NCBI GenBank assembly: GCA_965637545.1
Contig: OZ281496.1
Span: 13,578,001-13,642,000, forward strand
Direction of reading: 5' to 3'
DNA: 64,000 nucleotides
Source of the DNA: Phallusia mammillata
Lineage: Eukaryota
The translations under genes and the position numbers were made by a program. Positions 13,463 through 37,600 of this stretch are shown here, piece after piece. The notes below the pieces were generated by a model. The model was given only the letters and a program-made list of their open reading frames with translations. It did not search any database and had not been told where the DNA came from. Within the stretch, counting starts at the first letter, position 1, and each line of letters begins with the position of its first letter.

Positions 13463-13850
13463 ATGAATAGTCATTGTGTAGTTCTTATCGTTTGGAACAA
13501 AACACGGATCAAATGTCAAAATGAAAGTAAATTTGTAGTTACCGATGATGAACTAACAGAATGCTGTTGTGTTCCATAGTTTAGATTAGCACAACACGAA
13601 CCATGCAAATTAGTAAGGCTTACTGCGTGATCAAATCAGATTTAAAAAAAAGAAAATAGTGCGTTCTGACTACTATGACAAACCAACACCGTAAGAGCGT
13701 ACAAGAATGTTTATTAAAAACGAACGTTACAGAAAATATATACTTAAACAAAACACGACACACGAAGAGTTTTGCAAGTAAACGTGTTGTTTTAACCCGG
13801 AGCGAAAATAATTACAGTGACAAGACGGCTAAAAAAAGGTTCTATGATAG

Positions 13851-14027
13851 TTGAGTTGAGTTTATTTCGCTCGGTGAAAAAATCGTAGTAACACAATTGC
13901 ACTAAAATATTCACCTTGCCGGAGATAGCTGCGCAACGTTGAGACGTTAAAAAGCGCGACAAAGTAGAGGGCACAGTTGGTGAAGATATGAGAAACGCGC
14001 TGCAGCTACACCGTTATTATAGGCGTT
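13851..14027. repeat. ~180-bp dispersed repeat, second copy at 37262-37442
   Basis: Shared GTTGAGTTGAG...GCCGGA(G/A)ATAGCTGCGCAACGTT...AACGCGCTGCAGCTACA. Confidence 0.7.
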
Positions 14028-14862
14028 ATGTGACGGGGACTCGCATCAGAGGGTGAGGTTGAAACGTTGGTGGAACCAGTCAGGTTGGGACCTAATCTAA
14101 CCACCCGTGTTAGGGAAAGAGGGTGGGGTTCGACAGGAAAAGAAACCACCAAAAGAAACCCTGCCGGATAGTTTCGAGCGCCGGAAGAAAGGGTGCAGAA
14201 CATACATTGTGACGTTATATTAGACTAGTTCGCATTGGACTATATAAAAATAGATAACAGATTAGTAAAGGAACACTTCCTCTAGTATGTACACGAATAG
14301 TAAAAAGAAAAAGAATACAAGACAAAAAAGTCAAAAACTCGGAAGCAACACGTATTCGGTCGAGGGCATCGAAGGGGGACGTGGGTCGCAGTATCAAATC
14401 CATCCGGGTTGTTCGACAGCTGTCTGTAAATATATTGGCAGCAAGTCAACTGCTCGAGCAATAACCAGACACAATCACACAACGCAAGTGTTTTTGTTAG
14501 TTAACACTACTAAAACAAGTGTTTGTGACAAACCAAACTTTTATAGTGTAGGCTATAGGTGTATTACTAAAAAATACAGATTATAAATTCGTAGCCGAGA
14601 AAAAATAGTGGTCAAGTGGTACATCAACCGTGGTAACGCTATTACATAAATTATGTTAGTAGTGATAAAGTAGTAGTAGTGATAAAATAATAATAGACCT
14701 AGGTCCAAATGTGGCTGCTGGCACTATACAGTCAGTAACTAAAAACGCATGCTAGTTAGCCGGATCTGTAGTGAGACAAGGGTTGTCCAAAGGACCGGTT
14801 ATAAAAGGTGGTGAATGTGAACAAAAACTGATTTGTCATGCATGCTTATGTGTAGCAGTTAT

Positions 14863-17800
14863 CTAAAAAAGTGTTGAGCTTTGTAGCAAATGTGCAGTGT
14901 AGGAGTTTGCAAAAAATCTTGCGTTTGGTGCGTTTCTTATTTCCTCAGGAATGCTATTCCATATTTTGGGACCAATATATTTTATAGATTGTTGAATTAG
15001 GGTTGTTCGATAAAAGGGTTTAACAAAAGAAGACCTGGCACGCGTTTGTATATTACTACAGTTTATGTTTAGAAAATCTTTAAACATATCTGGCAACATG
15101 TTATTGTCACATTTATACATAAAAATTGCAATTTCTAACTCAAAAAGCTCCTTGATAGATAGAATATTATGTCGGGACATAACTTCTTGTAGACTGTTAT
15201 TGTGTTTGATGTTGAAAACACATTTTAGAAATTTGTGACATATTCTCTGTAGTTTTGCAATTAGCCTCGTTTGACCGTGGTGCCAGTTAACAATGCAGTA
15301 TCGTATATGGGAGATTATCAATGCATGATAAAGGCTTAGTAGGGTTTTCCCTAGGTCTTATCTTGCAAACAATGGCAAGGTTTCGTTTACATGACAAAAC
15401 CAATTTGTTAATATGCTTCTTCCAGGAAAGCCTTTCATCAAGAATTATACCCAGGAATTTTATGGATTGTACCTGTTCCAGGACATGATCTTTAATTTTG
15501 ACCTGTATCGATTGATAGCTGTGGTTTTGTTGTTGAAATAGAATAGTTTTAGTTTTCGATACGTTCAATGTCAGTTTGTTTGCTAACAGCCAATCAGTGA
15601 TGTTTATCATTTCCTTATTCGCTGTGCACTGTAATTCGTTATTTGACTTAGCAGTTAGTAAAATAGTAGTGTCGTCAGCAAACATCAGTGGCGATCCGAA
15701 TTGTAGGCAATTTGGAAAGTCGTTAATATAAATAATAAATAACAGAGGACCCAATTGAGAACCTTGGGGTACTCCGAGTGAGATAGGGCATTGGTTGTTG
15801 GAAATAGCATCATTGCATAGGACCTTCTGTGAACGACCGGTAAGATAGCTTTCGAACCATTTGTTGGGAATACCGCGTATTCCGCCCGCAATGTGATTAA
15901 TTTCTGTAGTAAATCTAGAAAAATTCCCATAGTAGTAAATTTATTGTTTAGGTTTTCCGTGACGTTCGCTATAAAGTTTGTAGTGACATGACTGGTCGAG
16001 TGATTTCTACGAAAACCAAACTGATATTTAGTGAAGAAGTTGGTGGATGAGAGGAACGAGTTAATGCGAGTAAACACGAGCTTCTCAAGTATTTTGGAAA
16101 GGTTCGAAAGCAAGCTTATCGGCCGGTAGTTTGTTGCCAGTTTGCGATTTCCATTTTTGAAAATAGGAACTACTTTTGAGATTTTGAAATCATCCAAAAA
16201 ATACCTGTACTTAGCGATCTATTGAAAATATGTGCGAGGCTGGTCACAATGTTTTCTGGAAATGCTTTAATAACCCCAATAGGAATTCCATCAAAACCAC
16301 AGCTCAATTTTGGTTTCATTGCTTTGATTATGTTTACTATTTCACCAGGGCAGGTCGGAAACAGAAACATTGAATTAGCTTGTGGGGGATCCAAGAAAGT
16401 AGTAAATGATTTTTTTGGCATTTCTAGTTTATCTGCCAGATTTTTTGCAATTGTTGAAAAAAATCTGTTGAAATGATCTGATATTTTGGATGGATCATTG
16501 GTGGGATTATCATCAACAAGTATATGACCTGAAGAAGATTGACGCGATCGACCCAAAAGTTTGTTTATTATGGACCATGTGCTTCGCATATTGTGTTTTA
16601 CTTTGCCAAATATAGCCTGGTAGTGTTGTTTCTTTTTCTGAGATAATTTGCGATTGTAAATATTTCTTACATAGTTGTATTTCTCTTTTCGTTCCTGTGT
16701 TTTTTTGTTTAGGTATTTTTTGTACGCTTTCTGTTTAGCATAAAGCAGCTTAGAAAGATCTGAATCATACCATTCATTATTTATTGCTTGACTTTGTTTG
16801 TTAAGAATTGGGAAACATTTATTGAAGATTGTACCAAATAAATTACTGAAAAGTTTAAATGCCTTATTTGGTTCATTCTCACAGAGAATGCTTGAGGTGT
16901 CAGCTTGGCCCATCAGATGAGAAAATTTAGCAAGGTTTTTTTCTGAAAACTGTCTAAATGAGGTTTGGTTGCCAACTTTATTTTTTCTATTAACACTTAC
17001 AAAAACAGGAAGATGATCAGATATGCAGTCCAAAATTATGAAGGATTGGGTTTGATTTTTAAGGTCATTAGTCCAAATGTGGTCAAGGCATGTTTCACTT
17101 GTATCTGTGATTCTTGTTGGTTTGTTGACTAATGAAATGAAAGAGTTATCAAATAGAATATTGGTAAAGTTGTCAATTTGATTGTTGCTAATATCCTAGA
17201 GGTTGTAATTAAAATCACCAAGAATGTATGAACGATTCTTTTTGTTATTAATAGTCAAAAGGGTATCTTTTAAAACTCTTAGAAATTCATCGTTTGTGTT
17301 TAGGTTCTGCCCTGGTGATCTATAGATAGTTCCACATGTTATGGTTTCAGTGCCCAAATCTATATCCACAAAAATAGATTCAAAAACTTTTTCGTTCATT
17401 ATTGTCAGGTCTTTACATAAAGAGTGTTTTATGCCAGATTTAATAAATAAACCAACACCCCCACCAGTTGCTTTACATCTACTATTTGAGATAAAAGTGT
17501 AGTTTGGTAGGTTGCAATGTAAACCAGGTTGATTATTCCTAACCCATGTTTCATTGACACAAATAATAGTAGGTTTAATATTCATATTATGTATTAATCC
17601 CTCGAGTTTGCAGAAGTTATTTGGGTTAACTAATGACCGCGCGTTAATGCAGAGTGCTGAAAAACTGGAAGAAGCATGACAACTTGACACTGGTAATTGG
17701 TTTGAATAAACATAGCAGCTAGGATCAGTCAACTCATTATCTGAACTATTACTTTCAGAATCACAATCATCATTAATTTCAGTGGAGAGATAATCTGGGA

Positions 17801-17987
17801 GTATATTTGGTTCTTTTGTGCCCTTATGTTGGTAATCGAACTCCTGGTCCGTGAGTGAATTAAATGGGAAACAAGAGTATTCAGTATTTAAAAAATTGGT
17901 AGTATGAATGGAATTCGACCTACTAGTTGTGCCCCCTTTTTGACTTTTAGGTAGATCTCTGACCGGCATAGGGTAAGCCATGCTCAT
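14863..17987 (-). pseudogene. LINE ORF2 (apurinic endonuclease + reverse transcriptase)
   Basis: INARSL, VNETW, GGGVG, GDFN, CLDHIW, SDHLP, NYRPISLL, QFGFR, GVPQGSQLGPLLF, FADDT, FLGIILD and YIGPKIWNSIP motifs. In-frame stop at 17196-17198, frameshifts near 16200, 15900, 15760 and 15330, and the SKAFD block deleted. Confidence 0.93.
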
Positions 17988-18068
17988 AGGTTGTTGCTAT
18001 AATGAATTACATCTGGTACAGTAGGACACAGTGTGCTACATTTATCATGCAAAAGTAAGTGTGGTGAT

Positions 18069-18758
18069 CTAGTTAAGGCAATTAAGATCTTCTATTGTAC
18101 GGATCACCTTTTTTTGGCCATGGGCCATTGCATGGATGATTCCATTGTTTGTCCATGTGTTTCTCATTCCAATCCTCTCTTGTACTTGTCGAAGCAGTTG
18201 TAGGCGCTTTCTTGTGAGGGATTCTGTCAGAACAAGTCCACTTCGAGCCAGGTTTCTTTTTTTAAAGAATAGATCATTCCGAACAGACCTTCGAACAAAT
18301 TTTATTATTACAGGTGTGCCTTTCTTTGCTGGAAGGACATGAGCAATGTCAATGTCCTGTTGTGTTACGGGAACACAGGACTGTAACTTTACATTTAAAA
18401 TAGGCAAAAGAAAGTTAACCAGGTCAGAATGACTTCCCTTGGGCACTTTATTAGCACCATGAAGAATCAGGCAGTTTCTTCGTCCATATTGTTCAAGGTC
18501 ATCCAAGTCCTGCTCACAGCTCTTCATCCTTTCATCGAAGGTACGGATCTCCGTCTCAAGTTTGGAAAGCAGGGCCCTCAACTCGCCAGCTTCTTTCATC
18601 ATTCCTTCAGATGAGAGTCCAGCTGTGGAAACAGTTTCTGGGATTTTAACAGCATTTACTAGCTCGATTTGTTCTTCCAACTTATCTTGTCTTTGTTTGA
18701 ACTCTTCAAGTGCTTGGTTCAGTTTTTCCATTTGTGTCACATTGGTTGATCTCCCCAT
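18069..18758 (-). CDS. LINE ORF1 protein (coiled coil + RRM/CTD-like), open 229 aa
   Basis: Coiled-coil N-terminus, LEQYGRRNCLILHG, DIDIAHVLP, PVIIKFVRRSVRND, LTESLTRKR, WTNNGIIH; lies directly upstream of ORF2. Confidence 0.88.
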   Translation of the reverse strand: MGRSTNVTQMEKLNQALEEFKQRQDKLEEQIELVNAVKIPETVSTAGLSSEGMMKEAGELRALLSKLETEIRTFDERMKSCEQDLDDLEQYGRRNCLILHGANKVPKGSHSDLVNFLLPILNVKLQSCVPVTQQDIDIAHVLPAKKGTPVIIKFVRRSVRNDLFFKKRNLARSGLVLTESLTRKRLQLLRQVQERIGMRNTWTNNGIIHAMAHGQKKVIRTIEDLNCLN

Positions 18759-18841
18759 TATTTCAGAATTCAGATGTACAGTTCACTAATTTAATTGAGC
18801 AAAATGGCTTTATTAAATAATCCTAAGCAGTCATCTATCCC

Positions 18842-18857
18842 CTTATTCAAATAGAAT
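18842..18857 (-). other. Ciona-type spliced-leader sequence ATTCTATTTGAATAAG at the LINE 5' end
   Basis: Exact 16/16 match on the LINE sense strand, 83 nt upstream of the ORF1 ATG. It is followed by GGGATAG rather than a GT donor, so it is not an SL RNA gene. Confidence 0.85.
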
Positions 18858-19708
18858 GATGGCATGAGGCGGCTAACTTAAAACGAAAATAATTACAAGC
18901 GTTTAAATAGGGCCAGTAAAGGTTTGATGCACATTAAAACACAAATGCATTGCTATACATCCATTTCTTGTTTTGGATGTCAAACTTTTCACAACTTGAC
19001 AGCGATTTATGGGTACGACTTATTTTATCCTAAGTTTCATCATTGCATTTTCAAGTGCTACCTCGATGAATCTGTTCAACGCTGGTCCAGTTGCGATCCA
19101 TATGATGTCGTCTCTAAATCGTTTAAATATACGACATTTTTCTCAGAGTCAAAGTGATTATCTCCGGTAGCAATAGCATCGGTTTGTTGATAACAATATT
19201 GACCATACCCAGTTTCAACATATATGATATTGAACACCTCTAGGCAGATTTGAGTAAAAGCAGCTGTAATGCAAAGGCGTCCTCTAATTTGTGGACGCTT
19301 TCACTTTTTTACCTCCTTTACATGGTGCATACTTTCACCCCAGAATTCGTCAATGTCCGACTTGCAGTATCTGATATTTAATAAATGCAGTTACTCGTGA
19401 TGTTGCTGAAGCAGCTTTTAGGGGCCTGTCAGGAACGTCGCGTACGTTGATAGCTTCAAGTGGATACGCGCATCGGGGTTATACTATTTTCAAAGTATTT
19501 TGCTGTAGGTCGAGAATAAGCCAAGTATCAGAATTACATTGATTGCCCCCAGGTAGATACAATTGCTTATACGTGGATCTGGCTCGTACAATAGTGCGAA
19601 TACCCCATCTTCCGTAAATGCCGTCACAAACGTTCTTACTCCAGTTATTCCGTGTGGTCACAAAAGTTTTTGCTTTTTTTGTTGTAAAGATCATAAAAAG
19701 TTGTTGAC

Positions 19709-35489: not shown

Positions 35490-35960
35490 GCCCATGTGAG
35501 GCGAGACCTATTTAAACCTTTAAAAACTGTGTCGAGAATGAGCTTGAAAATAAAATCTAACGGTATGTTAGTGAACAGACTTCGAACGTTGCCATATGGG
35601 AGCTGCCCAATCTCTTGTATTGCGGATGTAAACACGATTGAGTCTGCGAGGCTGACTCGTATGTGAAACTGCCATTTGAATGGGCCTCATCGGTAAACGT
35701 GGGTTGTGTACCGTGGGCAACCCATGCATGGTGGGATGATGCATCATGTGGTAGTTTGTGTTGTGTCCTCCAGAGCCTTGGCCTTCTTCAGATATCGAAA
35801 ACAATTCCGAAACCCACACAGGTTGTGAATTGTATCATGTTACTTGCCTCGGTTTTGAAAGTAACGCCAGGTTTTTTTTGCTTATTCAAATAGTAACATA
35901 TACGCAACTTTTTTGACCAGGACCTTCGCCGATAGCCATATTTTTTGATCAGGTGCATGA
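35490..35960 (-). pseudogene. Penelope-like RT fragment
   Basis: MHGLPTVHNPRLPMRPI and VRSLFTNIPLD motifs in different frames. Confidence 0.65.
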
Positions 35961-36989: not shown

Positions 36990-37600
36990 GTCATTTTCTG
37001 TATTCTGTAGATGAACTGGATCCACTTTGCATACATGCAAATAACCACACCACAGCTAGTGTAATCTGGCTGAAGGGCGTGTTTTAGTACTGTGTGCTGT
37101 GACAGAAAAAAACAACATTTAAATCTGCAGTTATTGAATAGCTTTCATTTGGATCTAAATAAATTAGAATCTGATTGACAATATCTACCATTAGTAAAAC
37201 CTAATGACGTAGAGTTGGATTCCAAGGAATGAAATGAAAACTTTGGGTTGTCAAGGTGATTGGTTGAGTTGAGTTTGTTTTGCTTGGTGAAAGACAGCGC
37301 AGTGACGACACCATTGCACCAAAACAATCACCAAGCCGGAAATAGCTGCGCAACGTTAAAACGTTATGAAGCGCAAAAAAGTGTCTGGCACAATTGGTGG
37401 ATAGTGGTACAACGCGCTGCAGCTACATCGTATTATAAGGCTATGGTGGATGATGCATACAGGTGTTGCATAGCATCCATAAAAAACATTGATGATTTCG
37501 TCATACAACCATCCACTTTGAAACTGGTAGTCCATTGACTCCAAGATTATTTACGTACGATATGTTGACTTCAATTGCTTGAATTTGAAGGTAAGAGATG
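36990..37600 (-). pseudogene. Ulp1/C48 SUMO-protease-like domain, decayed
   Basis: GWLYDEIINVF (37514), FIPWNPTLRH*VLLMVDI...YLDP (His 37204-6, Trp codon changed to TAG), LQPDYTSCGVVICMYA (Cys 37052-4). Confidence 0.7.

Follow-up and report, generated by a model that had tools for sequence, protein, structure and literature searches.

How a long interspersed nuclear element (LINE) keeps a usable 5′ end is a long-standing problem, because promoters lying upstream of an element are not copied with it. This problem takes a concrete form in the ascidian Phallusia mammillata, in which a LINE copy carries near its 5′ end the sequence of the host spliced leader (SL), the short exon that is added to mRNAs by trans-splicing. 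The copy lies in a window (the whole stretch of DNA that was analyzed) of 64,000 nucleotides (nt), corresponding to positions 13,578,001 to 13,642,000 of the forward strand of contig OZ281496.1 (NCBI GenBank assembly GCA_965637545.1). A first-pass annotation, made from the sequence alone, had proposed that the LINE RNA was trans-spliced to the leader and fully reverse transcribed, and that each new copy could be trans-spliced again. How did the leader come to head this LINE, and is it inherited with the element or regained from the host in every cycle? The explanation considered best overall, which we hold with modest confidence, is that the head originated by splicing, has since been inherited, and now serves as the 5′-end and promoter module of the element itself.

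The exact 16-nt leader, ATTCTATTTGAATAAG, is found at positions 18842-18857 of the window on the minus strand. Read on that strand, ATC comes before it and GGGG / GGGATAG, not GT, after it, and exactly 83 nt separate it from the first open reading frame (ORF1), the ATG of which is at 18758. The match, its strand, its spacing and the lack of a following GT were thus all recovered as first described. The head of the element and its surroundings are composed as follows.

13849..18860, minus strand: whole LINE copy, approximately 5.0 kb; the family copies all match the window from 18859/18860 down to 13849
18858..18860, minus strand: ATC, the three additional bases immediately before the leader, which arrived with the element and are lacking in the SL RNA gene
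18842..18857, minus strand: copy of the host SL exon, 16 nt, identical to the exon of the tandem SL genes and to the Ciona SL
18759..18841, minus strand: 5′ untranslated region (UTR), 83 nt, supported by an alignment of nine copies from three families
18069..18758, minus strand: ORF1, 229 aa, intact, with a coiled-coil-like N-terminus, from the list of open reading frames
18861..19400, minus strand: upstream flank, a portion of an older repeat that is 96% identical to loci L006 and L007

Since the 16-mer is itself AT-rich and the genome has an A+T content of 62%, a chance or convergent match unconnected with the spliced leader has to be considered. Base composition predicts about 2e-4 exact 16-mers per window, which upholds the earlier rarity estimate of about 3e-4, and about 0.8 per 240-Mb genome; in shuffles of the window, with two or fewer mismatches allowed, 0.06 matches are expected. 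Against this expectation, 3,860 exact 16-mers were counted in the genome and none in the reversed-sequence control, and the position and strand of the leader are constant in all copies of the family and in other species. The chance origin was rejected on the basis of these genome counts, and its probability is negligible.

Most of the exact copies, 3,034 of the 3,860, are continued by GTAAG and repeat at a spacing of 553 bp in long tandem arrays on the window's own chromosome, approximately 2.4 Mb away.

G000:C3:11108338-11193357 and beyond: SL RNA gene arrays, of which locus L084 represents two units

The 553-bp tandem array is the SL RNA gene array of this species. One unit contains GGC, the leader and GTAAGCATCATAC in this order, followed by a short hairpin and a T run; gaps of 5-10 kb, which may be insertions, interrupt the units in places. 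The window leader is identical at 16 of 16 positions to the exon of these 3,034 tandem genes, and the published SL of Ciona intestinalis is the same 16-mer (PMC1488885 Table 1; PMC7986045). The earlier identification of the 16-mer as the host SL is borne out by both the tandem genes and this identity. Outside the leader, the SL RNA of the present species differs from that of Ciona: the gene repeat unit measures 553 bp here versus 264 bp in C. intestinalis, and the Ciona Sm motif following SL+GT has no match in this genome.

The leader came in with the LINE, because paralogous empty sites exist that contain no leader. In the paralogs L006 and L007, the two flanks of the LINE abut, separated by no more than a few bases; in the window, the sequences bordering the LINE on either side constitute one older repeat that the insertion interrupted. 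The joined form of the flanks is also present in a DNA sequencing run, although this may simply reflect the L006 and L007 paralogs. Comparison of the window with copies from its own family, at 93-99% identity, from a second family, at 72-77%, and from more distant families revealed ten independent copies in which similarity stops 0-3 nt upstream of the leader and gives way to unrelated flanks. The prediction of the first-pass annotation that the 5′ ends of the family coincide next to unrelated flanks is therefore upheld, with one start point for the ten copies, and copies that share sequence further upstream while lacking the 16-mer, named in advance as contrary evidence, did not appear among those compared. 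What requires correction is the start point itself: the copies had been expected to begin at the leader, and they start instead 2-3 nt upstream of it, with (A)TC in eight of the ten insertions. In old copies, single substitutions are found inside the leader, as expected for decay after insertion, and variants such as GAACAAG and TTTTAAT are among the mutated genomic leaders.

The body of the element comprises the following features.

14863..17987, minus strand: remnants of ORF2 in at least five overlapping frames
17196-17987, minus strand: APE endonuclease in ORF2 (Pfam PF03372)
15287-16197, minus strand: reverse transcriptase in ORF2 (Pfam PF00078)
13849..14862, minus strand: 3′ UTR and (CAACT)n tail (tail at approximately 13849-13861), a 3′ end common to all copies

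With APE and reverse transcriptase domains in ORF2, ORF1 upstream and a simple repeat tail, the element is an APE-type non-long-terminal-repeat retrotransposon, that is, a LINE. Searches of Pfam and the PDB detected only the APE and reverse transcriptase domains, the latter scoring nearer to R2 than to L1 among solved structures. ORF1 has no match in Pfam, and its best homologs are from Phallusia (49%), Ciona (43%) and Styela (41%). The initial description of a full-length LINE holds for the structure, which extends from the leader head to the repeat tail, and for the intact ORF1, but not for ORF2, which is split into at least five frames. Because ORF2 is broken, the window copy is dead. None of eight close or related copies examined retains an intact ORF2, and an intact relative in another assembly has a single ORF2 of 1090 aa in which the APE and reverse transcriptase domains are both present.

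Could the leader have been acquired otherwise than by splicing of the LINE RNA? Either insertion targeted to SL genes with subsequent co-transcription, or a switch of the reverse transcriptase to SL RNA as a template, would join the two sequences, and it fits such routes that the leader is followed by GT in most sister families and that locus L079 has the leader together with 13 nt of SL intron. The window's LINE presents a different picture. Its upstream flanks are unrelated to SL-gene sequence, its empty site holds no SL gene, its endonuclease is of the APE type and not restriction-like, and no sequence derived from the SL intron follows the leader. When eight LINE heads were aligned locally with the SL intron and compared with shuffles, no similarity after the leader was found: the window copy gave p ~0.5, and the p = 0.015 obtained for a single foreign locus lacks significance given that eight tests were made. 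Moreover, the junction is constant within each family, unlike the variable junctions of template-switch chimeras. A LINE type specific for SL genes was thus rejected, as the flanks are unrelated to the 553-bp SL unit and the empty site is an ordinary repeat, and so was a template-switch chimera of the U6/L1 type, as the exon alone is present with an identical junction within each family. Acquisition by either route is largely refuted for the window's LINE and is considered very improbable. The leader is the exon alone, ending exactly at the exon boundary, and it is for this reason that an origin by trans-splicing is proposed; co-transcription or template switching would leave SL-gene flanks or intron, and these are absent.

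The extra bases in front of the leader bear on how the head is maintained. Among the ten independent insertions, which belong to families A to C, TC is located directly 5′ of the leader in eight, and in six of these eight it is extended to ATC; the probability of this enrichment by chance is about 6e-9. The SL RNA gene has GGC, not ATC, at the same position. Throughout the genome, 14 leaders have ATC in front and 39 have TC, and LINE copies make up much of each total; the TC list includes a family whose ORF1 is 45% identical, and two copies of a family with 57-62% identity are absent from it. ATC and the leader together are identical at 19 of 19 positions among families A, B and C, for which P is about 2e-5 at a background identity of 57%. 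The next 60 nt after the leader are 55-82% identical between these families, and the remainder of the UTR about 50%. An origin of (A)TC from the SL gene or a variant SL gene was rejected, as the array has GGC and ATC plus leader is not enriched genome-wide. A target-site duplication was rejected as well, as other copies lack these bases after the tail; the ATC that follows the tail of the window copy thus looks like a coincidence. Target-site duplications are generally short or unclear in this lineage: no consistent duplication was found across the copies, and a few target bases at the window site differ from the empty paralogs. Because the bases are neither derived from the SL gene nor a target-site duplication, the complementary DNA (cDNA) would already have carried (A)TC, and the simplest reading is that the template RNA of the window's family began at -3 relative to the leader. 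In copy L062, the 10 nt before the leader (ACGAAGTGTC) duplicate target DNA located 18 nt further upstream; the complexity of this 5′ junction is suggestive of a template jump onto the target.

The association of leader and LINE extends far beyond the close copies. A six-frame search for ORF1 in this genome yielded 87 stretches with 24-100% identity. When the coordinates of leader hits were matched to those of ORF1 hits, an exact leader was found 50-160 nt before ORF1 in families with only 24-62% ORF1 identity; on contig C1, the leader is present at four of six ORF1 hits.

C1:990145, C1:2615372, C1:16140062, C1:21614324, C2:6974253, C3:15672320, C4:7216741: diverged families with the leader before ORF1

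Adjacent to the leader, a conserved 5′ UTR block covers the first 60-75 nt or so and includes GCTTAGG (18822-18828) and GCCATTTT, as observed in nine copies of three families. Between families A and B this block is 82% identical versus about 50% for the rest of the UTR, and GCTTAGG is located 3-18 nt after the leader in 24 loci of four families (A to D). A search of other ascidian genomes, which the first-pass annotation had recommended, revealed a leader-like head before ORF1 in Ciona and in two other assemblies. The C. intestinalis homolog has a leader with one mismatch 76 nt before ORF1; in one ENA assembly, ORF1 is preceded at 84 nt by an exact leader, and a second family there has a leader with one mismatch. 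At locus L089 (ENA ERZ21736675), two variant leader units of the ATTCTACTTGAATAAG type, each followed by TTTGCAG, are arranged in tandem upstream of ORF1; this could reflect either a duplication of the head or a leader that is different or longer in this species. No such leader was found upstream of the Styela clava homolog or of the homolog in one other assembly, the species' own leaders not having been checked. Overall, the leader head has been kept far beyond the conservation of the surrounding sequence.

These observations can be combined into a scheme in which a LINE transcript was most likely SL trans-spliced and then fully reverse transcribed, creating the leader head. This head has since stayed unchanged across families of this genome and in other ascidians, and the rest of the element has diverged. 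The RNAs behind the copies of the window's family would have begun 2-3 nt upstream of the leader, at (A)UC, which makes freshly trans-spliced RNA an improbable template for these copies. TC and the first bases of the leader form TCATTCT, which would be a consensus initiator with a CA start dinucleotide; it fits the initiator consensus YYANWYY at the level of the motif. In Ciona, promoters typically start transcription at CA or TA (PMC4691747). Because of the initiator match and the approximately 60 nt conserved next to the leader, the head is regarded as a putative 5′-end and promoter module of the element itself, and it may in addition act as a mimic of a translation leader.

The alternative, that the LINE is promoter-less, that read-through RNA is trans-spliced anew in every cycle at the AG of the leader or at a nearby AG, and that the reverse transcriptase added the extra bases on reaching the cap, draws on the leaders dispersed elsewhere in the genome. 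Approximately 830 such leaders stand before many unrelated sequences (the genome-wide leader counts include segmental duplicates). Of the 473 dispersed leaders that are followed by a base other than G, 218 have G directly upstream, 135 have C and 120 have A or T; G (46%) and C (29%) thus exceed the 19% or so expected for each, and A/T, expected at about 62%, is correspondingly rare. An extra G is a known mark of reverse transcription through the cap. The bias at -1 marks the leader as the capped end of a copied RNA, and this genome has seen large-scale retroposition of leader-bearing RNAs. In places, perfect head-to-tail [C+leader] units follow one another.

C3:17662839-17662890; C3:3098260-3098317; C3:14693173-14693230; C3:12079918-12079952; C4:27597489-27597523: perfect head-to-tail [C+leader] units with a spacing of 17 nt, two or three in a row

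The spacer C of these units is the -1 base of the SL RNA gene, and either re-splicing or template jumping onto free leader exons could have generated them. In other repeats, relict leaders adjoin exact ones, before or after them. In family D, whose ORF1 is about 30% identical, G occupies -1 in nine of the ten listed copies, and two copies carry a double leader.

G000:C3:4702411-4702452 and C3:4816110-4816151: family-D copies with the leader, GAA, a leader lacking its first 3 nt and GTTGCTTAGG, upstream of an open ORF1 of 267 aa

In these two copies a relict leader lies under a fresh one, the second having been gained by an RNA or cDNA of a LINE that already bore a leader. The tandem and relict leaders anticipated by the first-pass annotation do therefore occur, including in a sister LINE family.

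How are the two modes of maintenance to be weighed? Renewal in each cycle would explain, with no recourse to selection, why the leader is exact in families that are only 24-60% alike, and the excess of G and C before dispersed leaders, the G of family D, its truncated second leader after GAA, the [C+leader]n arrays and the occurrence of relict leaders in other repeats are all compatible with it. Nevertheless, (A)TC is family-specific and as conserved as the leader, and it could not be regenerated by trans-splicing at the AG of the leader; the bases upstream of the leader in the SL gene are GGC. In addition, neither an outron-like upstream region nor a parent copy was seen among the copies examined, and the conserved 5′ UTR block suggests that the head has a function of its own. 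As originally stated, the re-splicing of each new copy is not supported, given the conservation of (A)TC with the leader at 19 of 19 positions and the GGC of the SL gene. The part of that proposal concerning a trans-spliced and fully reverse-transcribed LINE RNA survives for the origin of the head, which consists of the exon alone, and (A)TC argues against the part concerning renewal in every cycle. We regard renewal in each cycle as a tentative alternative, decidedly less probable than inheritance of the head; on the sequences compared, we moderately favor an inherited head with its own start in the case of the window's family.

Several observations weigh against an inherited head with its own start. 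In L062, TC sits within the duplicated 10 nt of nearby target DNA. A start at -3 was deduced only from DNA copies. C at -1 is common genome-wide (29%) and agrees with the SL gene in this position, which means that some of the extra sequence may be derived from SL RNA. Furthermore, an initiator centered on the first A of the leader would not transcribe TC, leaving the regeneration of TC without an explanation. Finally, family D fits ongoing trans-splicing better, both in having G, not TC, at -1 and in the second leader on top of its two copies. The inherited-head and re-splicing models may hold for different families. A broader proposal, that an entire superfamily of ascidian LINEs relies on host SL trans-splicing for its 5′ end and cap, being transcribed by read-through and re-spliced in each generation, with G or C at -1 and the [C+leader]n arrays as marks of reverse transcription, is conceivable but in our judgment doubtful.

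Other leader-bearing sequences were encountered in the course of this analysis. In the window itself, a second leader-like 16-mer, TTACTATTTGAATAAG, lies at 35881-35896 on the minus strand with two mismatches and continues into an A run, and it may represent what is left of a leader-tagged retrocopy. At loci L032, L037, L039-L046, L049, L055 and L057 on contig C1, a (C)TGATG...AAATATA-like motif common to these loci lies 5-6 nt beyond the leader; no Rfam match at gathering scores was obtained for a hammerhead ribozyme in the repeats combining a dispersed leader with a CTGATGA-like sequence. Loci L034, L035 and L036 represent a repeat family with an internal leader followed by one or two decayed leader copies, in which the stretch before the leader resembles a branch point and pyrimidine tract (...TTTCTAACGA...TTGTTTC..AAAC). 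L079 (G000:C6:25774999) and G000:C2:7309962 contain an orphan TC, the leader and the first 13 nt of the SL intron, and L079 additionally has a leader fragment upstream and an inverted leader-like stretch downstream; both represent a different kind of SL-derived insertion. As for the 3′ end of the LINE, its last 170-400 nt are common to many short repeats, and the contig depth over 13849-14250 is approximately 100-fold above that of the LINE body, which is present in the assembled contigs of sequencing runs as scattered low-depth pieces. Such an excess is expected if an abundant short element, either a short interspersed nuclear element (SINE) or truncated copies, carries the same tail, which may be the case. 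The tail alone recurs at 37263-37437 of the window and at several other loci.

SLACS, CZAR and CRE of trypanosomatids and NeSL-1 of nematodes insert at a fixed site in SL RNA genes by means of a restriction-like endonuclease. The LINE described here resembles them in being physically linked to SL sequence, whereas it is dispersed, encodes an APE endonuclease and carries the leader along. Drosophila jockey, Doc and the I factor are LINEs with an internal RNA polymerase II promoter and an initiator at their first bases, and human L1 has its promoter in the 5′ UTR. By analogy with them, a conserved 5′ end would define the start of the retrotransposed RNA, and TCATTCT is consistent with an initiator; the present head differs in being the host SL sequence itself, and its promoter role is putative. 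Trypanosome L1Tc, with its Pr77 promoter, demonstrates that unspliced transcripts can be produced by a LINE itself even where the host uses trans-splicing (PMC1874656). U6/L1 and other template-switch chimeras, as well as SINEs with heads derived from small nuclear RNAs (context in Kojima, PMC4640811), resemble the ascidian LINEs in that sequence from a small nuclear RNA has become joined to a retro-inserted element on its 5′ side; in contrast to the U6/L1 chimeras, which contain a whole small RNA with variable joins, the exon alone is present here, with one fixed join per family.

The closest parallel is offered by dinoflagellates, in whose retrogenes relict spliced leaders were described by Slamovits and Keeling (2008), as cited in PMC7789003 and PMC6050394. 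In both systems a genomic copy of the leader stands at the 5′ end of a retro-inserted sequence, tandem or relict leaders point to repeated rounds, and the phenomenon is genome-wide. Unlike in dinoflagellates, however, the carrier is an autonomous LINE lineage and not retrocopies of host genes, the leader is kept exact across deeply diverged families and species, and the relict leaders show no truncation at an internal AG, the only AG of the leader being at its end. In Ciona, the SLFinder paper reported 38 leader loci in the genome, 23 of them inside annotated protein-coding genes, and left them uninterpreted, and one of its clusters has a GTT extension (PMC7346339), which families C and D show here too; the SLIDR paper labels such loci probable pseudogenes (PMC7986045). 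No published description of leader-headed tunicate LINEs was found, although they may have been mentioned previously by Yeats et al. (2010), in a study of Ciona SL genes and pseudogenes, or by Matsumoto et al. (2010).

A LINE lineage present in several ascidians thus carries the host SL as its first 16 bases, behind (A)TC in the window's family. If the leader was captured once and then inherited, it would now be an initiator or a mimic of host mRNA; the tunicate leader has been proposed to act like a terminal oligopyrimidine (TOP) motif under mTOR control (PMC4691747, PMC6883708). If, on the other hand, the leader is regained in every cycle, these elements would use host trans-splicing to define and cap their own RNA, and for the superfamily as a whole this would amount to a promoter-less LINE life cycle that also tags the approximately 830 other retrocopies. 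The approximately 830 dispersed leaders, with their biased -1 base, provide a built-in retrocopy tag in a chordate, a resource similar to the one that made dinoflagellates useful for work on retrogenes.
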